The translations under genes were made by a program, and so were the position numbers. This document shows, one piece after another, positions 13,861-40,177 of a DNA stretch of 64,000 nt. Position 1 is the stretch's first letter, and the number at the start of each line of letters is the position of its first letter. The notes under the pieces were generated by a model. The model was not told the DNA's origin and did no database searches. It saw nothing but the letters and a program-made list of their open reading frames with translations. This DNA comes from Perkinsela sp. CCAP 1560/9 (taxonomy: Eukaryota > Protista > Euglenozoa: Kinetoplastea): contig CBFFSA010000013.1 of the NCBI GenBank assembly GCA_965644495.1, forward strand, positions 1 to 64,000. The letters run 5' to 3'.

Positions 13861-15909
13861 AACCCCTCCGCACCAATAAGGCACCCACCCTTAACTTTTC
13901 AGCCAAATGTCCGTTTGGGCTGATTTTTGTTGCATTTTGCAGATCTCAACATAAAGACTTTGCGCGTGAAGAAATGAGACAAAAAGAAACGAATATGTAT
14001 ATTTTAGAGAGAGATTACCATTTTGTCACCTTTTCTCCGTTACTCGCCACACAAGCTTTGAGGCGAGCATCGAAGCTCAAAACCGAATCATAAATATAAC
14101 CTTGAGACAATTTACGCCAAGCTTTACGTACGCTTTTTATGAGATCTTCTTTATTTGTCGGATTGTATTCATCTACAAGACTTTGTACCATGCTCCACAC
14201 GTTTTCTATTGGTGAGAGATCGGGGGAGTTAGGCGGCCAATTTTTCAATAATTTCATTTTGTTGTCGTCAAGGTACGCTTCTGTTTCCTTCGCAGTGTGA
14301 GGTGTTGCCCCATTTTGCTGAAAAATACAGTTTGGGGTGAATGATACTTTTTTTAATGTTTTAATGTACGAAACACATGTAAAAAACGCATGTATGTGTG
14401 CACACGTCGGGCACAGCCGGTGGGAGGGGGAGGGTGGTTCGAACTCCGAGCCACAGTATGCACAGAACAATAGACCCTTGAGGGGGAGTTCTGCCATGGG
14501 GGGAGAGATTAAAGAAGGAAAGGACAAAATAAGTCAACAAGGTACAGAAACCATATCTTTATCGTTAAAGAATTATTCAGTTTTTAGCTGTTTTTCAGTC
14601 AATATTAGCACTATATGCCCCAGCAACGGATTCGTTCCCGAACCTCACGTGGTGTACTCAGCGGCCGGTCCTATTCCTCGCCCGCACGGGTGATACCAAG
14701 TCACCGTATGCTTCTTGTCTCAGATTATCTTGAGACAGGGTCGTATTCTCGGACAGCCCAAAAACTCGTATTCTCGGACAGCCCAAGAATCGGGCTGAAT
14801 TAGTATCGGCCATTGAGATAGAGTTCGAAAGATTACAATCCGAACGCAAGCAAGAGTGTATTAACACAATGAGCAGTTTCCGCAGGCGTTGCCGCATTCC
14901 GCAGGGCTAGTTACCTTATCGCAACCACTTGGCCAAGCCTCATGCGCCATAACGGTTTTCCACTTTCTGTAAGACCACCCCTGGGGAGTCGATACGTATT
15001 TCTTAGCATGAAAAGCGAATTTGTTTTAAAAATACATTCAACTTATATATATTTTTCGAAATGACCTAAAGACATACATCTCCGCAGTACGGTACTTCGT
15101 ACTAAACGTAGTACGGACCCCGTATTTCGTACTAGTACGTACTAAGTACCGTACTGCTGCGAAGGAGTGCTCATGAGAGCATGCATGCTGGGTACTATTC
15201 GTGTGGCGTAAAGTTCGGCTTCCCTTCACACGACATAGCCATTTGAACAGCGTCAAGTTTCTCCTTATCAATTCGAAGATCGCAGTGCTTACGATGTTGA
15301 TAATGATTACGAGTTATAGTTTTTTTTATGAGTCTTGCAATGAGATTCAAAATGGCAGCCAGGGGCCATGCATTTGTAATGACATTCATGCCCCATACCG
15401 CCAACGGGCATTGCATCATGGTCGTGATGACAATTTGCCGAGCAACGTACGACAGCAAAAAGGGGAACCGCCCCCTCTCGCATTAGAACGCTAAGCGGCG
15501 TTGCGTGATGAGTGCGAGAGACAGTTCTTTCGGGAGTTACCTCGCTTCCATCCTGTTCACCTCGGCCTGATTTCCTAGACATGGTGCTGGAGAAAAGTGA
15601 ATGAAAATTCAAAAGAAAATGCTATAAGTAACGGAAGAATAAATTATTTTAAGTAATGCGATCCCAACATTGTTTTCCAGTGAAAAAGATGAGCTTTTCT
15701 TTAATTGAAATTCGTAGTCAAGGTCCCACTTTGGCATAAAATATTTTTCAAAATGTATGAAGTACGTACTATCCGTACTAAGGAGATGTATGTAAAGACA
15801 ACGGGAACGTACAGATCTCAAAATTTTGCACGATAAAGTGGTGCGATAACCCCCCTAGCCCCCCTCGTGCGAAAAATAAGGGTGGGTGCCTTTTTGATGC
15901 GGGGGGGTT
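13861..15909 (-). mobile_element. Tc1/mariner element remnant with nested insertions
   Basis: TIRs AACCCCTCCGCACCAATAAGGCACCCACCCTTA and TAAGGGTGGGTGCCTTTTTGATGCGGGGGGGTT. DDE motifs IFQQNGATPHT..WPPNSPDLSPIENVW at 14015-14380. Confidence 0.8.
14380..14566 (-). pseudogene. SL-capped processed fragment of a zinc-ribbon protein mRNA
   Basis: SL-like AACGATAAAGATATGGTTTCTGTACCTTGTTG (14566-14535), a pyrimidine-rich UTR, then ATG 14497 MAELPLKGLLFCAYCGSEFEPPSPSHRLCPTC, fused to transposase sequence. Confidence 0.7.
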
Positions 15910-21496: not shown

Positions 21497-22439
21497 AACC
21501 ACATACCCATTTAACATACCCCCCGGTATGTTATCAAGGTATAGGTATGTTAAACATACAGTTTCTGTACCTTGTTGGTACTTAACCTTAGTTCATCCTT
21601 TCTTTCCCCCGCAATGGGCATACTCTTGCTGTATTTTCATGCCCGTTGCCGGTCGGCGCTAAGGCTGGAACTGTCCCCCTTTATCGCTGAAGAAGGGGAC
21701 GCGCCTTCATCCCTTCGCCCCTCCCCGACTCACTCCCCTGGAGTGAATTCTTCTCCCTCTCGGATTCTTTCCTCCCGACCCGTACCTCTCCGAGAGGGCT
21801 AGGCGTCACGGTGGCCTCACTTGAGGACCACTAGACGCGTCCCTCGCTGCCCGCGTTTACGGCTCTCCGCACGTGACGGTCGCCCAGCTCTCCGCACCTC
21901 GGCTCTGTCGCAGCTCTCTGCACCCGGATTGCCCCCGAAACTGTAATATGGGGATTACGCATCCGGCTCTCTGCACCTGCACATGACAACCGAGCTCTCT
22001 GCACCTGGGACGTCAGCTCTCTGCACCCATTCTCCTCCAGCGAGGGCAAATCCTCACGTGATCCACCCGTCGTATGCGGGTAAGGACAATGTGAGACAAA
22101 TCTCTGCAATCTAAGTGCTTGAATAAACAAATATAGGTATGTTAAGTAGACTGGTAATGAAATAGGAAAGAGAAGAAAATCACTTTCACTGTTAGAACCT
22201 GTATCTAAAGATATACCGCGCGTAGTACTAAATGCTAAGATGTTATCAAAATACGTTTAAAAACGCATACAGGAAACATCTTGTTAAAAACGTAAGTGAT
22301 ATTACGGTTGGATTTTGGTACAGTTGCACAATAAAAGCCGTGGGACGAGGGGGGGGGGTATGTTAAGTGTCGTGGGCCAGAATAACATACCCACCGGTAT
22401 GTTATCCAAGGTATAGGTATGTTAAACGGGTATGTGGTT
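21497..22439. mobile_element. TA-flanked MITE hosting an SL-capped insertion
   Basis: TA|AACCACATACCCATTTAACATACC ... GGTATGTTAAACGGGTATGTGGTT|TA. Confidence 0.8.
21554..22131 (+). mobile_element. SL-capped retroposed short RNA (SINE-like or processed copy)
   Basis: Starts with ATACAGTTTCTGTACCTTGTTG (21556-21577) and ends AATAAACAAA. Flanked by the 14-bp direct repeat TATAGGTATGTTAA (21540-21553 and 22132-22145). Confidence 0.7.
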
Positions 22440-24053: not shown

Positions 24054-26737
24054 TCATTTCTCTTTCGGAATTATTTTCGTACCATCTACGCTAAGGGCTT
24101 GCAGTTTATCAGGTAAAGTGAAATCGTTGACATTACCGTAAAGCTCCGAGTTATTGTCAAGGCAAAACCATGACAATCGTGGTGGAAGGTTATCAAATCG
24201 CACCAATCCGGAAAACTGATTATTAGAACAGTCGAGAGCATCAAGTTCGAAAGGTAAGTGTTGTAAATTAAGTGGTCCTGTAAACTTGTTGTATGATAGT
24301 TTAATTTATCATACCTTTATAAGGCAGAGAATATGCGGATAGGCCTGGGGGGCGCATATGACGCTGCCCAGACCTATCTTTTACAGACGTTATACCCGTC
24401 CTTCTGTCCAAACGGCAGACTCGCGGTTCTGCCAGATAATGAAACTGCCTCGAAGGGCGGTCTGCATTAGACTTTCTCGACATTTTTCCGCAAGCTTTGT
24501 GTCCTCGTCAAAGAGGAGATTGAGGTTTCGACAAGATGTGAGTAACGAGCCGCGGGCTCCCACTTCGAATACAACAAGGGTCGTCCTAGGGTGATTAATG
24601 CGTCGTTCATGGAAGAGAGCATTATATTTACGGGATTTGCCCTCGTGCGCCTGAGACTGGTTCTCTTCCCAGGGCACAGTGAGCTCAATGATGAACTCAC
24701 TTCCATCCTTAAGTGTAATCAAACCGTCGGGGCGAAGAAGGTCCTCACGGGTGCCGAGCCATGCCGGGGCATTCCTAAATCCGGGGATATCTAGGTGTAC
24801 GCTCTTGGTATACGGCGAACGCAGCAAGTGTTTTCCGAGCTCTTCAAGTAACATGTCATGACGGAGGGTATATCTCCCTTGCTGAAGGGACTCTTTGCAC
24901 CCCGAGAGCACGTGCCTTGTTGTTTGAGGTTCGAGTTTACATATGGGACATGTTACACTCGCACGCCGGAGACCCCAAAGCCGAAGATTGGTTCTGGATG
25001 GTAGGGGTGAAAGCGTTAGTACTGAAGCTGCGAAGCGAGAAAGTTTTTCACTGTTGAGGTTGTTCAGGGCCGCTGAGAACTCTTTCGCGAGATCAGCCTC
25101 GGAGGGGAGGCTCCACTATTTTGCTGCTGTCGGTGCCCGTCTCTGAAGCTGATTTATGACGTAAGATTCATGGTGATCACGGGCTATCTGTTGCGCCTTC
25201 CGCGCGTCATGAAGGTGTTGAATGGCGTCAGCGCTTGGACGAATATAACCAGAGGATCGTTTTTCTTCTTCTTGCTTGATTCGGGCTCGTAGTGCCGCCT
25301 GTATCGATGGGTCCCGCCACTTGTGCATCTGTGTTAAGGCTAGGATAGAGCATTCGGACCACAGCTTGGATAAACTTTTAAGGTTCCACCCTCGTTCAGT
25401 ATAAAGAATTTCGGTGCAAGTCGTGGATGCTGCATTGATCCATTTCTTAAGGTGACGTGTAATTCTTTTCTGCAATCGCAATACAAAGTTGAAAGTGACA
25501 CACGGGTGAACGGTGAGGGCGTAGCGCAGACGGGATACGATCGCTCTGTTGTAGATCCAAAGTTTTTCGGGGAGACTGTGTGCACTCTCGTCGACATTCC
25601 GAAGCCATGTTCTTAGTCTGACATCCAGCTTTTTGAAAAGTTCTTTCGCTTGCTGTGCTCCTGGTGCTATGGTCATTCCAAGAAAAGTGCTTCCACGGTC
25701 AAATATATGTGGTATCGCTTTGCCTTCGATACTGAGTCTCGGCTTCCTGGTCATGTACCCCGGGTGCTCACTGCCTTCACGCATGGACATGCACTGTGTA
25801 CGGCTCTTGTCTACGTTGATTGAGAGTCCTATTCGTCTCAGTGCAGTTTCGAGTGTGTTGGTCGCGTGCTGCATGTCGGTATCGCTGCTAGTCAGTATCG
25901 TCAGGTCGTCAACGTAGGCTTTCAGGAAATGCCTTGGAGTATCTGGGTAGTCAAGGCCATACCGGGGGCACGATTGCTTGAGGTATCGTAGTACAGTTTC
26001 CATCACTAAGTTGAAAATTATGGGCGACAGGGTATCACCTTGTAGTACGCCTCTGTGTATCGGTATAGCACGTGACAAACCTTCGACACACTTAATACGC
26101 ATTTCCGCATGTGAATACATGCTTCTATGTATGTTCTCATCTATGTTAATCATAGATCGCGGTAGACTGGTGAGGTCGATTTCACCGGATAAATTGGTGT
26201 CCGACATTAATAAGAGGAAAATATGATTCCCCAGGCAGGTTAAATCTATATTCCCCTGAAAAAAGTTGTTACACAGGATAAGTTCCTCCATGTTTTGTGG
26301 TAAATGGTGGAATTCCAAAGAGCCTGAAAATTGGTTACAGTTTATGGCAAACTCATCAAGTTCAGCCGGCAACATATCGAACAGTACTTTTCCCGTAAGA
26401 TCGTTGCAAGATGCTTTAAATTTGTGTAACGTGCGTAATGTGTAACGCCATTGCAGTGATCCTTTCAGTCGATTACTCCCAAATATGCCGAATGTTTCCC
26501 AAATAATGTTCGTTACTTGTTGTCCATCACAATCCACACCTTTCCACTCACATGCTGGCGTTGATGTATTCCACGATGGGTCTGGGTTCTCAATATCAGC
26601 GGCAAATCGTGCGAGCTCATATTCTTGTGGTTATTCGTTCCTCGCACCCTACTGGGAAGTCTACGTGTTGCATCGACATTTGACACATCAGCTGTGCAAC
26701 ACAGATAATACACTAAGGATATCATATTCGTACTCAT
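24054..26737 (-). pseudogene. LRR gene split by a retrotransposon
   Basis: The 5' part 26737-26139 (SRVRG cap, frameshift near 26632) ends LPRSMINID. The 3' part 24299-24054, absent from the ORF track, reads LSYNKFTGPLNLQHLPFEL...DGTKIIPKEK*. The halves rejoin in frame. Confidence 0.9.
24300..26138 (-). mobile_element. 5'-truncated HERO-like non-LTR retrotransposon
   Basis: RT motifs RGVLQGDTLSP and AYVDD, CCHC knuckle CPIC..H..C, RYTLRHD, RPDG..IELTVPWEE..KY. One nonsense codon at 25116. About 90-nt 3' UTR. Confidence 0.92.
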
Positions 26738-32258: not shown

Positions 32259-33570
32259 AGAGGGGTGACTCCGGGTGGATGTACCTAGGATATCTTTCGT
32301 CAAAATTTTCCTCCTTAGTTCCTTAATATTTTTTGCTTCAATGGGAAGATACAGAAATCATGTTACTGGAATTCTTATTCTGCTGGACTTAAACGAGGGT
32401 TTCGGCATGTAATACAAGTTAATAATACATTGTGCTGCCCCAAATGTCAAGTTTGGGGGGCTATAGGTGTAGGTTGGAGACACCTAGTTGTTCTCGATAA
32501 GGACTCGTCCATCACGAGCATATCTTATGTAAAGACGTTGAAGAAAGCACAATTTCCACAGAATTGTATCTTTCAACAAGATGGGGCTACAGCACACACT
32601 GCCCGTGCCTCTATGGAGTACATTACGGATGGAATGAACGATGTACTTAAAAATTGCCCCCCCAATTCGCCTGACCTTTCCCCCATAGAAAACGTTTGGT
32701 CGATGGTCCAGGATGCGGTGGACGAAAAGACTCCATCGGATAAACTTTCACTTATCCGATGTATACGCAAAGCGTGGTCTCGTTTGCCACAAAAGGTGAT
32801 CGATAAAACTGTTTTGAGTTTTGATGCTCGCCTTAAGAAGTGTATAGAACTCAAAGGCGAAAAAGTGACAAAATGGTAATTGTAATCTAGAAACGCTAGT
32901 TGCTCTTTGTTTCAGCCCACTCTTAGGTGCGCAAAGTTCCTATGGTGAGATCTGCAAAACGCAACAAAAATGAGCTCAAACGGCCACCTGGTCGAGAAAA
33001 AAGGGGGGGGGGGGTGACTTTTCGTTGGGAGGGGTTTAGAAGCGTTAGTCCTGATTGCGAAGAACCGTGAAAAAGGGCTTTTTCAATGTTTCGAATCGTG
33101 CAGAGCTTCAAGGTGTGAAGGAAAGTGAATTCCCAGAATATTGGCGATGCACCCAACGAAGGATGGACAAGAATCGGAAACTGTTCTAGAAAGAGGAAAA
33201 AAGGTGCGGAAACTTATGAAAAAATGACCAGGAGTGAAATGAAATCCAAAATGAAGCAACAGAGTGAGTCACATAGACAAAAAAACGTACGAAAAAACTA
33301 GTACGAAAAAACGTACTAGTTTACTGCGTACCAGTTTAATCGCCGTAAGGCACGTACATTCAAGGAAAACAAATAGACACAATTAGCTACTCATTATGCA
33401 CCATACAATGTTTATTTTTACACCTAACTTGTTAGTAGTACTCCACTTGTTCGTTACATTTCATTGATGTATGCGTGACGTACATATTCATAGATCGATT
33501 ATGCGTTTTTTCACCAAGTCGGAGCTCCGTAGAAGTTTACTGGGAGCGCCTGGGCAGGAGTCACCCCTCT
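32259..33570 (+). mobile_element. Tc1/mariner element remnant
   Basis: TIR AGAGGGGTGACTCC / GGAGTCACCCCTCT. ORF 32430-32879 has VWGAI, FQQDGATAHT and PPNSPDLSPIENVW; close relative of the 14015 copy. Confidence 0.85.
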
Positions 33571-34359
33571 AAGTAGAGGGGTGTATTTCAGGTAGACCTA
33601 AATAAGCAATACTGTTGTACTCCTCACCAACACTGATTACACTGGGATTTCTTTTTCGAACTTTTTCGATAAAACATGTAGAACTATTTTTTTTTGGGGG
33701 AAACATTGAAAAGTATACCAATCATTTTGTCATCTACTAGGTTTCCTTTGATAAATATTTTTGGTGCACTGGACATGAGAAAATGTTTGACACCGGGAAC
33801 GGGATATAATTTTCGCGTTTTTGGTGCACTGAATAATCCAGGGATCTATTCCACTCAGTTAGAATAGAAGATGGCGGTACCACTGTTTGTTGCGGACTAT
33901 TCCTCTAGTTCACATTCTGATGTTTCTGTGGATAAGCGCGAACATTTCCTGGTACGGGATGCGGTAGAATATCAGAAAAATAATTCTGAGTTAAATCAAG
34001 ACGGTGCTTACTATACTTCGGGTAAAATAGTAACATCGGCCACTCCCGTCAATTCGTTATCGGAGATGTTAAGACTGATTAAAGAGCGGGGAAGACTTTG
34101 TAGTCCCACAGAACCTGAAAAGCAGTTCTCACTTAACATACAGTGCTCCAGCTGCAAAGGAAGCTTGGAAAAGTTCAACTCCCCCGAGAAACGATTCCTC
34201 TGCAGATAGAGGTGGACCAAACCCTGCGGCAGAGAATCCAACGTGATCGTCCCAAAGAAACGGTTCTCGGACAATGATGATGATGATATCATATCTTTTA
34301 AGATAGAGTATTTTGAGGATGTAACTAACTTGCGCATATGACGCTGTTAGGTGCATCCC

Positions 34360-36981
34360 TTATGCGGACAGTGTCTCTGCATCGCTCCATTGCGGGGAAT
34401 CACGCTTATGCCATAATAAGAAGCTGGAACGGATAGCAGCTCGGGAGAGTGACGCCCGACATTTAGCCCCCAAATCTTCGTCCCCTCCAAACAACCGATT
34501 AATATCCGCTGAGGAGGCTACCAGACCACCTCGTGCTCCAATTTCGAATACGAGGAGGTACGTGTTCGGGTGCACTGTTCGTCGTTCGTGTAATAGGGCG
34601 TTGTACTTGAGGCGTTTATATTCATTTGCCTGCATACAGTTTTCTTCCCAGGGGACAGTGAGCTCAACGATGAATTCTGTACCGTCAGTCAGTGCAACGA
34701 ATCCGTCTGGGCGTTGATGATTTGTATTGTTGTGCAGCCAGTGTGGTGGATTTCGGTGACCTAGTAGGTCAAAATGCTGGTATTTTGTATGCGGGGATTC
34801 TTGGATGCGTTTGGCCAGTTCAGCTAGCACTGTGTCGTGTCTGAGGGTATAACGCCCCTGATCAAGAGATGTTTTGCAACCTGAAATAACGTGTCGTACC
34901 GTCTGTGCTTCTTTTCCGCATACCACACATGTCGCATTTGAGAAGTGAAGGCCACATGTCCGAAGGTTTGACTTTGAGGGTAAAGGAGTGGTAAGTAGAA
35001 CCGAGGTCGCAAAACGTGTTAGCTTCGTGCTGTTCAGATTGTTCAGTACGGCGGAAAACTCCTTCGCAAGTTCAGTTTCGGAAGGTGTTGTCCACCATTG
35101 GGCTGCGACCGGTGCTCGTTTCTGAAGGTCTTGTACAATTTTCGCTTCGTAATATTCCCCCATGATTTGTTTGGCGCGTTTTGCGTCGTTTAGATGTTGG
35201 AGGATTTCGCATGCTGGTCGTAGTTGCCCTCTAGCTCGCCTGTTTTGCTCCTCTTCAATGCGGGAACGTAGCGCTGCTTGGACATTGATGTCTCTGGATT
35301 TATTCATTTGAGTCATCGCGGTGGCAGTGCATTCGAACCAAAGCTTAGAGAGTGCTGTTAGGCCCCAACCGCGATCTGAGTACAGGACTTCTGTGCTACC
35401 TTTAGAGGCCATGTTGATCCATTTCCTAATGTAGGAGGTTGCCGTCTTCTGGAGTCGAAGTATAAAGTTGAACGTTATGCATGGATGGACCGTGAAAGCA
35501 TATCGTAGGCGAGCGAGCATGACATTTTGATAGATCCATAGTTTTTCAGGTAGCGTATGTGCGCTTCGGTGCACATTTTGTAACCAAGTCTTAAGTTTCG
35601 CGTTCAACTTTTTATATAGCTCTCTGGCTTGTTGTGCTCCAGGGGCCAGTGTCATTCCCAGGAAGGCACTACCTCTGTCGCAAATGTGGGGAATCGGATC
35701 TCCGTCACATTCAATCTTTGGCCGCCTCGTCATATATCCTGGATGTTCCGTTCCCGCTCGAATGGCCATACATTGTACCCTACTTTTTTCGACGTTGATA
35801 GACAATCCAATGCGTCTAAGGACGATAGAGAGTGATTGTATTGCATTGTTCATGTCGAAATCACTTGACGTAATTATCGTAAGGTCATCAACATAAGCCT
35901 TTAGGAAGTGCTTTGGTGTATCGGGGTAGGATATGCCATAGTACGGGCATGTGCGACGCATGTAGCGGAGGACGATCTCCATCGCAATATTGAAGAGCAC
36001 TGGGGATAGAGTATCACCTTGTAGTACGCCACGTTGCACTGCGATTTCCTTGGTTAGTCCTTGGTCGCATTTGAATCTCGTAGTGGCTGAGAGATACATG
36101 CCTTTGATGTATTCAATGATTTCGGGTGACACGCGCGCCCAGGTGAGAGCTTCGAATATGCTGTCGTGGGAAAGCGAACCGAATGCGTTTCTGAGGTCGA
36201 TCTGGGCCAGACAGTACTGATTCTTCTTGCGCTGATGATGTTGCAGCAGGTTACACAGTGTTTGGGTGTGTTCCAGAGTTCCATTCATCCGTGGTAGAAA
36301 CCCCTTTTGGATAGTCGTCTCAATGACTCCTGAGCTTACAGCATGGTCCAGGAGTTGGTGTCCTATGATGCTGTGAAGAAGTTTTCCCAGACAGCTTGTG
36401 AGTGCTATGGGCCGCCAGTTCCTAGGTATTTTAGGGTCTCCACCTTTGTGGATAAGACGCGTGATCGCTAGAGACCACGACGTGGGGCATGTCCCGAATT
36501 TTATTAAGTCATTAAACATTTTGGCCAGGGAGCTGTATAGTGCTGGGCATCGTTTTAGCGCTGCGTTTGTGATTGTATCTTGCCCTGGTGAGCTAGAGCC
36601 CCGTTTGCTTGAGATGGCATTGACGATTGTTTCGGCTGTTACTGGTATCCACGTCATTTCGTTGGTGGCTCTAGGGCCTAGTATATCGAAGTTAGGGAGC
36701 CGGAGAGTGTCGCGCTCTTTCGTTAGGGTTTGACTGAAATGTTCCTCTATTTCGAGCATTGTACAGCTTGGGTATTGCGTGTTTGTGACTTCATCCTCAC
36801 TGGGTCTGTCCATGGCTTCAGCAGCCGCAGTCCATGGGTTTCTTGAGAAACGTTCATGCGCCCATCTACCTTCTAACGCTCGGCGTTGCACGTCGGCCTC
36901 GTCTGCGTAGATTCTTTCTAGCTTCTTGTTTTCTTTGATTTGGCGGGGTAAGGTACAGTGTATTTCGGGCTTCCGTGCCAT
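34360..36981 (-). CDS. Reverse transcriptase - CCHC knuckle - restriction-like endonuclease
   Basis: WRPIALTS, QKGF, IDLRNAFGS, GVLQGDTLSP, YVDD, CVVC..H..C, RYTLRHD, RPDG, VELTVPWEE, KRLKY and EIGARG are all present and uninterrupted. Confidence 0.93.
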   Translation of the reverse strand: MARKPEIHCTLPRQIKENKKLERIYADEADVQRRALEGRWAHERFSRNPWTAAAEAMDRPSEDEVTNTQYPSCTMLEIEEHFSQTLTKERDTLRLPNFDILGPRATNEMTWIPVTAETIVNAISSKRGSSSPGQDTITNAALKRCPALYSSLAKMFNDLIKFGTCPTSWSLAITRLIHKGGDPKIPRNWRPIALTSCLGKLLHSIIGHQLLDHAVSSGVIETTIQKGFLPRMNGTLEHTQTLCNLLQHHQRKKNQYCLAQIDLRNAFGSLSHDSIFEALTWARVSPEIIEYIKGMYLSATTRFKCDQGLTKEIAVQRGVLQGDTLSPVLFNIAMEIVLRYMRRTCPYYGISYPDTPKHFLKAYVDDLTIITSSDFDMNNAIQSLSIVLRRIGLSINVEKSRVQCMAIRAGTEHPGYMTRRPKIECDGDPIPHICDRGSAFLGMTLAPGAQQARELYKKLNAKLKTWLQNVHRSAHTLPEKLWIYQNVMLARLRYAFTVHPCITFNFILRLQKTATSYIRKWINMASKGSTEVLYSDRGWGLTALSKLWFECTATAMTQMNKSRDINVQAALRSRIEEEQNRRARGQLRPACEILQHLNDAKRAKQIMGEYYEAKIVQDLQKRAPVAAQWWTTPSETELAKEFSAVLNNLNSTKLTRFATSVLLTTPLPSKSNLRTCGLHFSNATCVVCGKEAQTVRHVISGCKTSLDQGRYTLRHDTVLAELAKRIQESPHTKYQHFDLLGHRNPPHWLHNNTNHQRPDGFVALTDGTEFIVELTVPWEENCMQANEYKRLKYNALLHERRTVHPNTYLLVFEIGARGGLVASSADINRLFGGDEDLGAKCRASLSRAAIRSSFLLWHKRDSPQWSDAETLSA

Positions 36982-38824
36982 GGGTGAATCTAAGGGATCG
37001 TTTCAGTCGTTGTATATGCTTGGATAGTTCTTGGTTCACTTTTTCTATGGCTAAAGGTCTGTATTTAAATTTGGAATGTCCTTGTTTTGTGCGAAGAACG
37101 AACCCTTTGGTGGGATTCACCTCTTGACTCACCTCAAAGGTTGATACAGCGATAGACGCGGCGAGTATAGCACCGTTCTCCTTTGCTAGGAACGCGTTTG
37201 CGGTGTCTTTGTGTAGGAGCTCCTTGCATCTCCCTAGGGCTCGCTTTTCTACTGAACGCCATTGATCATCGTTTAGTTTGACGCAGAGTTTCCCACCTTG
37301 AATGTCGTTGTGTTGTTGAAGTAGTTCATGCCTTTTCTTGTGTAAGGGATCGTCGTGGTTCGGTGCCGGGCAATGATTCGTTGCTTCTCCGGAGATATTC
37401 GTGGTATTTCTTGCATGCGTGGAAGATTGCAGTTGAGAGAGAGGCCCGTATATCTTGCAGCATCGGTGGGCGCATGAGAGCTTTTCTCGGCATGTGTGCT
37501 TGCAGGGTCCTTTTCCCCCCGCGCCTGGGTACCCAAATGTAACACAAGTCGTACTGGGTCGCGCTGCGTGGTTCGTGCTTTGATCTGGCTGTAAACTCGC
37601 GCTTTTGGGGGCTTCTTTGACGTCATTCTTCCTAGATATGTGCTTTGCTTCGTAGTGCTTCATAGTGCTGCGGTACTTCCAGTCACGCTCGGGGTCCTGT
37701 GTGGGGTCGTATCCTGACTGCATCGATCTCTCGCTTTTCTGTACTGCCTCGTTGACAGGGGCCCCTGCTTTTCTACCAGTTGCGAAAGCTTCACAGAGTT
37801 CAGAGACCCTACTAGTTGCCCATCCTGCCAACACTCCGACCTTTTCCAGAAAGGTTGTATCGTCATCATTCATGTCAGGCACTGGATTCGGGGTGGGCAG
37901 GTCGTTCACTGGGCCTTTGTACTGTGATGTTGCCGCTTTCTCTGCTCTTGAATGCGGGTTTCGCCGACTTCTAGTGGGCATGTCTGTGGCCTTCGGGGAG
38001 TGACCAAGTTCGCGAGTCGAGCTTCTCAAGTCCCATTTTAGCGTTCTGCCGGTGGTCGAGTTCAAATTCGTTGTGTCAAGGGTAGAGGTGCTTGCAGGTT
38101 CTTGATTGTGGGTAGGTCCAAATATTTTGCAACACTTGTGCAGGCACGTTAGCTTGCTAGAGCTTTTGTGTCTGCAGGGTCCTTTGAGAGGTTCCACGGT
38201 CTGTGGTTCGTTGGGTTTCGTAGAACGTGGCTTCGCAATTTGGAAAGGTGTGCCCTCTACTCTTTGTGCCGGTTGGTATGGTGTAATTTCGGTGTTGGAG
38301 TTTGTGTTTCGGGTAATTTTGATGGTAAACTTTTCAAGCCCCGGTACTTTAGCCCCGCTCACGGACTTCAGGACTGCTTTGCCTAGGGCGTTCGGGCTGG
38401 AGTACGAGTCGCTGATGCTAAGGTGGGGGTCATTGAATAGGGAAGTCCAGCTGGCGTGGTAGTACTTTTCCGATGGGTGCGAGTTTCTGCTAATTTCAAT
38501 GTAGTCGCAGGCATCGTGATGTATTAGTTCCTCGAGTGTAGCTGCCTCTATTATCAAATCATGTGGTGTTCCCTTGCCGTTGAGGGCCTTACTAAGTGCA
38601 GCTTCAGCACCTTGTTGTGAAGCGATGCGTTGTCTCACGAGATGACTAAGACAAGCGGACTTTATGTCGGGGTAGTAGTTCCAAAGCATACTATCCATCG
38701 TGCGTATTTTGACGGATCGTGCCCGGCTCTGGATGAAATGCAAAGACTGTTTCCGCGCAACGCCGGGTCCTTGAGGAAGGCCTGGTGTTGCATTTTCCTC
38801 CTGTGTGGCGGTTCTGGTTGTCAT
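36866..38824 (-). CDS. Retrotransposon N-terminal region / ORF1 with two Cys-His motifs
   Basis: 652-aa ORF directly after the SL and UTR, containing GPCRHKSSSKLTCLHKCCKIFGP and GPCKHTCREKLSCAHRCCKIYGP. Overlaps the RT ORF by 116 nt. Confidence 0.85.
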   Translation of the reverse strand: MTTRTATQEENATPGLPQGPGVARKQSLHFIQSRARSVKIRTMDSMLWNYYPDIKSACLSHLVRQRIASQQGAEAALSKALNGKGTPHDLIIEAATLEELIHHDACDYIEISRNSHPSEKYYHASWTSLFNDPHLSISDSYSSPNALGKAVLKSVSGAKVPGLEKFTIKITRNTNSNTEITPYQPAQRVEGTPFQIAKPRSTKPNEPQTVEPLKGPCRHKSSSKLTCLHKCCKIFGPTHNQEPASTSTLDTTNLNSTTGRTLKWDLRSSTRELGHSPKATDMPTRSRRNPHSRAEKAATSQYKGPVNDLPTPNPVPDMNDDDTTFLEKVGVLAGWATSRVSELCEAFATGRKAGAPVNEAVQKSERSMQSGYDPTQDPERDWKYRSTMKHYEAKHISRKNDVKEAPKSASLQPDQSTNHAARPSTTCVTFGYPGAGGKGPCKHTCREKLSCAHRCCKIYGPLSQLQSSTHARNTTNISGEATNHCPAPNHDDPLHKKRHELLQQHNDIQGGKLCVKLNDDQWRSVEKRALGRCKELLHKDTANAFLAKENGAILAASIAVSTFEVSQEVNPTKGFVLRTKQGHSKFKYRPLAIEKVNQELSKHIQRLKRSLRFTHGTEARNTLYLTPPNQRKQEARKNLRRRGRRATPSVRR

Positions 38825-38869
38825 GGAGGTTTCATACAGTTAGTACCAAGTAGAAAAATTAAAATAATT

Positions 38870-38898
38870 CAACAAGGTACAGAAACTGTATCTTTATC
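38870..38898 (-). other. Spliced-leader relic
   Basis: GATAAAGATACAGTTTCTGTACCTTGTTG contains the conserved kinetoplastid SL core ACAGTTTCTGTAC and a TTG end. Near-identical copies lie at 14535-14566 and 21556-21577. Confidence 0.85.
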
Positions 38899-40177
38899 AA
38901 CATACTCAGTGTAGGGGAAAGTTGACTCAAGTCAACGGGACCGGTGAATTGGTTTCCCGGGATGTTAAGACGCACCAGCGCCGGGGGAAGACTCGCAAGT
39001 TTGACCTCTTCTTGAAAAAGATTATCATACAGCACCACCTCCTCCAGGGAGACGGGAAGCGTGTCCCAGGGAATGCCCCCTGTGAGAAATGTTTTTGTGA
39101 GGTAGAGCATTTGCGTGGTTGCGGGAAGCGCCCTGAACTCCAGGTATCCTCTGTAAAAGTCGCGCAGGACAACCACGCGCAGCCTTCCCTGGGGGTCACA
39201 TCGGAACCCCTCCCAGGTACACTCCGAGACGGGCTCACGCCCACACCATGTGAAACGTGAGAGCACCCAGCTCGAGTGGGGGTTCTCAACGCGATGTACG
39301 AGACGCTCCATTTGCTCGTCATGAGGAAGAAGCGCTGCAATGACCTTTCCGCGACGAACGTGGACGTCGTCCACAGTATGGAGGAGAGAGAAGGCGAGGG
39401 TAGAAAGGAGGAATAAGGGCATGTAAAATATACGGGGAATGAATTGAATAAAAGAAAAAAGAAAGAAAATAAGTAAATAATGGAGGCAGTACTTACCGAG
39501 TTTAGGGATGCACTTACCGAGTTTAGGTATCTTAGAAAGTTTGTTGTGTCAAAGAAGAGTAATAGAACCGATAAAAGAAAATGGACTAATAATTTATCAT
39601 TCGTAATCTAATGAAAGTAGCATAAAAAATCAAAGAGATAAACCACATCAGAACGAAAAATTTGAATTTCGTATGTATCCTTTAAAATATCCACTTCTAA
39701 ATGAAAGTTCATAGGGAAGCAAGAGTACAACAACAAAATCAAAGAAAATATTTTACTTTTTCCACTTTTCTTCCGCGTAGTTTCATGCTTTTCGTTGGTA
39801 TAGCGGTGCCTAATCAATATTTACTACATGATCTTCAACTCAACACTTTATAAATTATTAATAATTCAGAATACTCTTTGTAAAATTTTATGACGTCAAA
39901 GTTCCTTGCGTCAAACAGATAAATAAATAAAAATGTTTGTCACGTCACGAACATTCGTTTTCTTTAGCTCAGGTATGTGCAAGGTACGTTTTTTCAATTA
40001 CAACATCGCCAATCTTTATGCAACATATCGTTTAGCAAGACCGCTGTATAAAGAACAATGCCTATAGGTACATTCAATTCATAAACACACTTTTTTAATC
40101 ATTTTTCAGGAATTTATTTTAGCAAGGTTTCTGCCTCAAGCAGGATAGAAGAACAGTCTGCAGGCTCTGAAATAATA

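Follow-up and report, generated by a model that had tools for sequence, protein, structure and literature searches.

A leucine-rich repeat gene interrupted by a leader-headed retrotransposon

The analyzed stretch (the window) comprises the first 64,000 nucleotides (nt) of contig CBFFSA010000013.1 of the kinetoplastid Perkinsela sp. CCAP 1560/9. On its minus strand, a leucine-rich repeat (LRR) gene is split by a retrotransposon of 4623 nt that carries a part of the host's spliced leader (SL) at its 5'-end. An earlier note, made from the sequence alone, had described an SL-like 5'-junction, a 5'-untranslated region (UTR) of about 45 nt without any AG, and an ATG, all within LRR coding sequence, and all of these features were found (38898 down to 38824). 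The head turned out to be the real spliced leader: it matches nt 10-38 of the exon in the organism's own SL genes at all 29 positions, which refutes the possibility that the real leader differs from this sequence. The start of the relic is ambiguous by one base (nt 10 or 11), because its first G is common to the TTG of the target. After the relic, the element continues with AATTATTTT where the SL gene reads GTATGAGAAGC. The relic ends exactly at the exon/intron boundary, which indicates that the template RNA carried a spliced SL.

A paralogous LRR gene (C2:1137629-1138200), which is 96-97% identical on both sides, is uninterrupted at the insertion point and reads ...ATGTTGAATTTGTCCGAG... there. 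This empty site contains neither the relic nor the element, and therefore the two arrived together. The filled site lacks 2-3 target bases that the empty paralog has, and there is no target-site duplication. The junction is not an assembly artifact, because a second public contig of the locus covers both junctions at 99.9% identity, three copies carry the same head, and a comparison with the empty paralog shows a precise insertion.

As the earlier note had stated, the element lies in sense orientation: all 14 open reading frames (ORFs) of at least 250 aa in the window (14/14) are located on the minus strand, and the element is in sense within this one-directional cluster. Independent heads were found at the same LRR codon position, after L-x-x-L-x-x-L, in the window, in the C2 paralog (134 bp further on), on C12, and elsewhere, and SL-headed elements of several families are present in LRR genes at the same codon, just before x-L-S-x-N (Table 1). 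This suggests a target preference for an LRR coding motif. Because heads recur at this position, the sense orientation may follow from target choice, and not from selection for expression. The subfamily of the element is not strictly LRR-specific; one sister copy, on C23, is situated in a (TA)n tract.

Table 1. Features of the split LRR gene and the inserted element, and further loci mentioned in the text. Positions without a prefix refer to the window.
Feature	Position	Strand	Remarks
LRR gene, 5'-part	38899..39422	-	ATG at 39422, ends ...LSPTLSML
SL relic	38870..38898	-	SL exon nt 10/11-38; 3'-end is the last base of the exon
5'-UTR	38825..38869	-	45 nt, T-rich, no AG; motif GTACTAAC at 38839-38846; upstream ORF of 4 codons
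N-terminal part, 652-aa "ORF1" as read	36866..38824	-	ATG at 38824; twin Cys/His motifs at 38129-38176 and 37457-37504
7-bp insertion	36956..36962	-	not in either sister copy; frameshift splits the single ORF
Reverse transcriptase part, 873 aa as read	34360..36981	-	overlaps the 652-aa frame; RVT_1 at aa 181-404, E 6e-29
CCHC knuckle	34876-34929	-	C-x2-C-x8-H-x4-C, aa 685-702
Restriction-like endonuclease motifs	RHD 34834-34842; RPD 34705-34713	-	RPD followed by E and K
3'-UTR	34275..34359	-	85 nt, ends in (ATC)4, no poly(A)
LRR gene, 3'-part	34011..34274	-	resumes LSENRFFG...
SL-headed elements of several families in LRR genes, same codon, just before x-L-S-x-N	38899/34274; C2:1137613-1137640; C12:~200.7k; C1:710.3k, 1773.7k, 2073.4k, 3742.2k; C3:390.2k		
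Retro-copies of the whole SL RNA	C1:410.1k, C2:801.6k, C20:10.9k, C25:23.9k, C49:34.4k, C86:12.0k		start at about SL nt 3-6

Class, integrity, and sister copies of the element

Judged from its sequence, the element belongs to the restriction-like endonuclease (RLE) group among the retrotransposons that lack long terminal repeats (non-LTR retrotransposons), is of the R2/CRE type, and ancestrally contained one ORF. Downstream of the reverse transcriptase (RT) lie a CCHC knuckle and a PD-(D/E)xK-type endonuclease, and there is no APE domain, which is the arrangement of the RLE group (R2/CRE/NeSL/R4/HERO). The solved structure closest to the element protein is that of Bombyx R2 (8gh6, E 6.5e-32). 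The N-terminal 652-aa frame did not yield a Pfam match.

Two sister copies, on C23 and C12, form a subfamily with the window copy; the three are 98-99% identical, and their flanks are unrelated. All three read ATAAAG...TTG directly after the flank, followed by AATTATTTT, and all three (3/3) end with an (ATC)3-4 tail. In the C23 copy, a single ORF encodes 1489 aa, and single frames, of 1500-1860 aa, are also present in more distant relatives within the genome. What the earlier note had taken for a separate ORF1 is the N-terminal region of one broken protein. Its designation of a full-length retrotransposon was correct with respect to length, but the element is not intact, because the 7-bp insertion splits the ORF. 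An alignment of the three copies revealed a private 4-bp deletion in the C12 copy and 13-21 private substitutions per copy, with few in common. This star-like pattern shows that the copies are siblings of an unseen source, and not parent and offspring. A second R2-like RT fragment with 59% identity and one in-frame TAG is present in the window (24399-26138, minus strand); no intact SL core was found upstream of it within the window.

Sister subfamilies have conserved the GTACTAAC motif of the 5'-UTR in their own UTRs. In the form (T)GTACTAAC(T/A)(G/T)T it has been kept in the 5'-UTRs of three subfamilies, and a fourth has CTAAACTGTAT. The motif resembles a branch-point consensus and also the start of canonical trypanosomatid leaders (AACTAACGCTAT). 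The absence of AG from the 45-nt UTR, which was considered as a possible signal, is not significant, as 24% of shuffled sequences are also free of AG. A scan of positions 33500-39500 did not reveal any Rfam ribozyme at E<=0.1, in agreement with the earlier view that no ribozyme is involved.

The host spliced leader and its genes

A genome search retrieved two tandem SL RNA genes of 297 bp (C1:~661.3k), which define an SL exon of 38 nt and are adjoined by a 5S rRNA gene. The exon begins with AACTTTAACG, contains the core ACAGTTTCTGTAC, which does not vary among published euglenozoan leaders (PMC3795323), and its last base is directly followed by GTATGAGAAGC, a kinetoplastid-type 5'-splice site. 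The core, the splice site, and the tandem repeat are the characteristics of kinetoplastid-type SL RNA genes. These two genes are the only promoter-bearing SL genes in the assembly, and both are intact. Two genes are far fewer than such organisms usually need, and the SL array has probably been collapsed in the assembly.

In addition, retro-copies of the whole SL RNA were found at six loci (Table 1); they consist of the exon and an intron of about 68 nt, followed by a short A-rich stretch, and several of them precede short tandem repeats or GGAGGTGGCGGAG-rich sequence. A contig retrieved for a relative in another organism did not include the 5'-end. Metagenome scans did not yield any SL/UTR junction, only one SL gene of a related organism. 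This gene (contig Ga0316204_10168667, 1-70, minus strand) has an identical 38-nt exon and a different intron and upstream region, showing that a related organism is present in the environmental sample.

SL relics are abundant in the genome

The genome to which the window belongs was searched for SL relics (21 Mb, 110 contigs). A 20-nt SL core matched 477 times, compared with 0 matches for a reversed control, and a 12-nt core was found twice in the window (0.25 expected). There are 623 occurrences of the last 12 exon nucleotides in which the next base is not G, and overall the number of relics is about 480-620. About 216 relics extend back to nt 3; they mostly head poly(A)-terminated units, which often form head-to-tail arrays. 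In about two thirds of the near-full relics, and in many unrelated contexts, a T is present where the SL gene has an A at the second base. This may be due to misincorporation opposite a modified base next to the cap, which would fit a mature capped RNA as template. Together, the SL-headed poly(A) retro-copies and the retro-copied whole SL RNAs indicate that cellular SL-bearing RNAs are reverse-transcribed in this organism.

A search for a retro-copied host gene with a recognizable parent led to one candidate, which was rejected because it proved to be a multicopy family in which every match starts exactly where the SL ends. At C1:2477627-2492939 (plus strand), four SL-headed units, the relics of which start at nt 2-3, are arranged in tandem with a spacing of exactly 5092-5093 bp. 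A third SL relic of the window (14535-14600, minus strand) retains nearly the full length of the leader (TCTTTAACG...), and its core contains two substitutions; downstream lie a T-rich UTR and a small ORF rich in Cys (MAELPLKG...). It resembles an SL-headed unit at C1:~1191.1k. The window also contains a member of a short interspersed nuclear element (SINE)-like family, "SL+GTAC" (21540-22145, plus strand), with a relic from nt 19, a body of about 580 nt, and a flanking 13-bp direct repeat, ATAGGTATGTTAA. Within this family, relics start at nt 8, 11, 12, 14, or 19, and one member has a doubled relic. The C12 sister copy of the window element adjoins another element, and lies between two SL+GTAC elements (C12:~200.7-201.3k and C12:~205.9k). 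For the upstream one, the flanking repeat contains 10 nt of LRR flank together with the relic, and the duplicated target is either 10 bp or, with the relic, about 36 bp. This element could have been inserted into a relic.

The relics of R2-like elements have a preferred start

To obtain 5'-ends of R2-like elements, RT matches were paired with relics 2-2.5 kb upstream, which yielded 19 ends from at least five subfamilies: those of the window copy, its two sisters, and 16 others. In all 19 heads the relic ends at G38. In 11 of the 19 it starts at nt 10/11, whatever the flanking base, and the remaining starts are nt 7, 13, 13, 14, 14, 15, 16, and 17; none (0/19) reaches nt 1-6. The nt-11 start is common to the R2-like heads and the SINE-like SL+GTAC family, whereas the poly(A) class reaches nt 2-3. 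This difference indicates that the boundary is a property of the R2-like machinery, and not of the RNA.

The position between nt 10 and 11, 9 nt upstream of the conserved CAGTTTCTGTAC, corresponds to the boundary of nt 11 and nt 12 in the canonical 39-nt mini-exon, which is where CZAR and SLACS insert (PMC5814959). The match may be a coincidence or a remnant of a CRE-type recognition of SL DNA. Several 5'-junctions contain "stutters", in which 6-9 nt from the beginning of the relic (ATAAAGAT), in some cases with a piece of the flank, are repeated two to three times before the full relic; examples are C10:467.5k, C1:1835.9k, C1:3937.6k, and C2:1137.6k.

Leaders have been added repeatedly

The position of the UTR that adjoins the SL differs within subfamilies. 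Next to the long form, AATTATTTTCAATTTTGTACTAAC, there are at least four short forms, which start 3-7 nt before GTACTAAC, and every long- and short-form junction falls exactly at G38. If deletions had occurred at random, they would not share G38 as their end; therefore new SL additions must have occurred, and not one inherited fusion. The junction of the SL with AATTATTTT is common to subfamilies that are only 33-45% identical in their N-terminal regions and 50-58% in their RT regions. Its conservation across such diverged subfamilies indicates that whatever sets the junction must travel with the element.

Doubled relics point to repeated addition as well. A complete exon end followed by relic nt 17-38 was found at two loci (joined after AG16), and a complete exon end followed by relic nt 23-38 at nine loci (joined after AG22); one AG-joined doubled relic heads a SINE-like element. 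These tandem relics indicate that copies with a relic went through another round of splicing and copying. Other doubled relics are joined after TG28: a doubled TACCTTGTTG is present in the R2-like head at C10:~504.6k and in several poly(A) units, and one head has extra TTG units. AG-dependent re-splicing is therefore not the only process.

The earlier note had predicted that daughter copies must either re-splice at an AG within the relic or be dead ends. The tandem relics at 11 loci bear out the first alternative in part, but none is present in the window copy or its two sisters (0/3), many joins follow TG, and the bulk of the copies is left unexplained. The dichotomy does not account for these, because the SL/UTR junction has been conserved across subfamilies with 33-58% identity and no copy with an acceptor has been assembled. 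In the comparison of 5'-ends that had been proposed, all three copies are SL-headed with the same start, and neither tandem relics nor a polypyrimidine-AG were found among them.

Possible origins of the leader

The following is established by the comparisons described above: the relic is the SL, it ends exactly at the exon boundary, it arrived together with the element, and the same head is present on two sisters and on 16 other R2-like ends. In our opinion, the whole is probably explained by target-primed copying of a trans-spliced, SL-bearing element RNA. According to this explanation, the window element would be a young copy of an R2/CRE-type non-LTR retrotransposon, broken by a frameshift. 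Its RNA would have carried the host SL, joined by trans-splicing directly to the 5'-UTR of the element, and would have been copied by target-primed reverse transcription. The cDNA, or its joining to the target, would have stopped about 10 nt short of the cap, such that only SL nt 10/11-38 became fixed in the LRR gene. The core of this explanation, a template RNA with a spliced leader, is well supported. Kinetoplastid genes do not have promoters of their own, and the 5'-ends of mRNAs are generated by trans-splicing. We infer that ordinary trans-splicing attached the SL to a read-through transcript and that transposition was templated by the capped mRNA; as a trans-spliced unit, the window element might dispense with a promoter.

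Several observations weigh against this explanation. A source locus with a polypyrimidine-AG acceptor at the junction was not found in the assembly, and the assembly does not contain any SL-less or acceptor-bearing copy; the star-like pattern among the three copies points to a source that is not seen. The three subfamily copies (3/3) and all nine long-form UTRs (9/9) are SL-headed. Two candidates for SL-less UTRs turned out to be chance matches to a short motif. No relic has been mutated to ...AG by a T-to-A exchange at nt 37 (three relics vary at this position, none to AG), copies spliced at an AG just before the ATG were not detected (the scan gave one unrelated match), and the short-form SL/UTR junctions are not preceded by AG in long-form relatives. 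The doubled relics, moreover, are often joined after TG, and the clustering of relic starts at nt 10/11, with none at nt 1-6, is not predicted by simple run-off copying of a capped mRNA. The key step, regaining the leader, is sharply constrained by these negative results, and the life cycle proposed in the earlier note is, as a whole, only partly supported.

Alternatively, the relic could be an inherited functional 5'-module that is not renewed in each cycle. Transcripts would then arise by read-through or from an internal promoter, initiation or processing would fix their 5'-end at SL nt 11, and the SL-derived sequence would be kept by selection in a few source copies. The nt 10/11 boundary in 11 of 19 heads irrespective of the flank, the same start in all three subfamily copies, the lack of any acceptor-bearing copy, and the stuttering of the first 8 relic nt at several junctions, as if the template had ended there, speak for such a module. 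However, the relics are identical to the SL across subfamilies with 33-58% protein identity, while single dead copies already show mutations in the relic. The head that starts at nt 7 is longer than a module that starts at nt 11, the four or more different SL/UTR junctions within subfamilies all lie exactly at G38, tandem relics always begin with the complete exon end, and no Rfam ribozyme was found, all of which makes an inherited module unlikely. The unseen source could instead reside in an SL gene, as the earlier note had considered: source copies at the exon/intron boundary would be driven by the SL promoter, SL and element would form one primary transcript, and the dispersed copies would be off-target dead ends. 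The CRE clade (SLACS, CZAR, CRE1/2) indeed resides in SL genes (PMC5814959, PMC12278014), the constant junction of the SL with AATTATTTT would not need an acceptor, and, with only two SL genes assembled, the probably collapsed array might conceal such copies. Yet the assembly gives this no support. It contains no interrupted promoter-bearing SL gene, the six other loci with exon and intron are retro-copies of the whole SL RNA and not interrupted genes, the heterogeneous junctions within subfamilies and the tandem relics would need extra events, and unrelated poly(A) retro-copies are SL-headed as well. We therefore regard a source in SL genes as quite improbable.

The SL might also be gained during reverse transcription, if an R2-type RT jumped from the 5'-end of an uncapped element RNA to the 3'-end of a free SL exon, an intermediate of trans-splicing, or switched onto another SL-bearing RNA. 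End-to-end template jumping is a known property of the R2 RT. It would not need an AG at the element side of the junction, and the doubled relics are joined after G16, G22, G28, and G35, each of which shares at least the G with the last base of the exon. However, the free SL exon is a rare intermediate that is held by the spliceosome, the short-form UTR junctions follow A or C and not G, and the SL-headed poly(A) retro-copies, which presumably stem from another RT, have the same exact exon end, so that jumping appears very improbable. A chance resemblance or a chimeric assembly join has a practically negligible probability, given the identity of 29/29 bases, the 477 genomic matches against 0 in the control, the three copies with the same head, the coverage of the locus by a second contig, and the precise insertion relative to the empty paralog.

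A more far-reaching scenario can be drawn, which we consider doubtful. A whole R2/CRE-like lineage and its SINE-like dependants would have made the host SL their obligatory 5'-end, regained in each generation without a conventional acceptor. As the relic boundary lies at the site homologous to that of SLACS and CZAR, the endonuclease would still recognize SL DNA and would trim or join its own cDNA there. The elements would then descend from ancestors specific for SL genes, which moved out into LRR genes and kept an SL-based 5'-end mechanism.

Relation to known systems and implications

In dinoflagellates, retrogenes carry relict leaders (DinoSLs), including tandem partial relics that result from re-splicing at an AG inside the old SL (PMC6050394, PMC5585692, PMC12014239). 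Likewise, a DNA-encoded SL heads retro-copied sequences in the genome studied here, and AG-joined tandem relics occur at 11 loci. The differences are that the host is of the kinetoplastid type with a 38-nt SL, that the carriers are autonomous and non-autonomous retrotransposon families and not only host genes, that most copies contain a single relic, and that many doubled relics are joined after TG and not AG.

In kinetoplastids, the link of the CRE clade to the SL consists in the insertion into SL genes (PMC12278014, PMC5814959). The window element shares with SLACS, CZAR, CRE1, and CRE2 a single ORF, zinc-finger-like motifs, RT, RLE, and an association with the SL (PMC12278014), and its preferred relic boundary between nt 10 and 11 aligns with the insertion point of CZAR and SLACS (PMC5814959). 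In contrast to these elements, it is located in an LRR gene, its sisters in a (TA)n tract and beside another element, and the assembled SL genes are uninterrupted. It carries the 3'-part of the exon at its own 5'-end, whereas CRE elements have SL nt 1-11 in their flank. Where these have poly(A) and a target-site duplication, it has an (ATC)n tail and, in the window copy, a target loss of 2-3 nt without duplication. This comparison is based on features, as the searches did not retrieve any named CRE sequence. With animal R2, it has in common the order of RT, CCHC, and C-terminal RLE, a near-blunt insertion that loses few target bases, and the entry of host sequence at the 5'-end of the RNA into the junction. 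However, R2 is co-transcribed with 28S rRNA and has a self-cleaving ribozyme, whereas no ribozyme was detected here and the host-derived 5'-sequence is the SL. The ingi/L1Tc elements are kinetoplastid long interspersed nuclear elements (LINEs) with the internal promoter Pr77, and their transcripts have been described as unspliced (PMC8190864). In ingi/L1Tc a conserved 5'-terminal module answers the problem of a missing promoter, and the same may hold for the present element, but ingi/L1Tc have an APE endonuclease and an element-encoded module, while the present element has an RLE and uses the host SL as module.

A search of the full-text literature, with incomplete coverage, did not yield any description of a mobile element from kinetoplastids that is headed by a retro-copied SL; within that literature, SL relics were described only for dinoflagellates and Perkinsus-like taxa, and kinetoplastid CRE elements only as insertions into SL genes. 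A retrotransposon that travels as a trans-spliced mRNA would solve the promoter problem of LINEs in a way that has not been described for kinetoplastids. Such a traveller would lose its acceptor at each jump, and the genome records how this is handled, in the form of single relics, doubled relics with AG and non-AG joins, and shifting SL/UTR junctions. The paradox of the lost acceptor thereby becomes testable by mapping of RNA 5'-ends. The relics also serve as an intrinsic label by which each retro-copied sequence of the genome is marked, like the DinoSL relics of dinoflagellates. The coincidence with the SLACS/CZAR site links the dispersed elements to the classic SL-gene-specific clade, and the preference for one LRR codon position suggests that the insertions are a source of variation for the family of LRR surface proteins.

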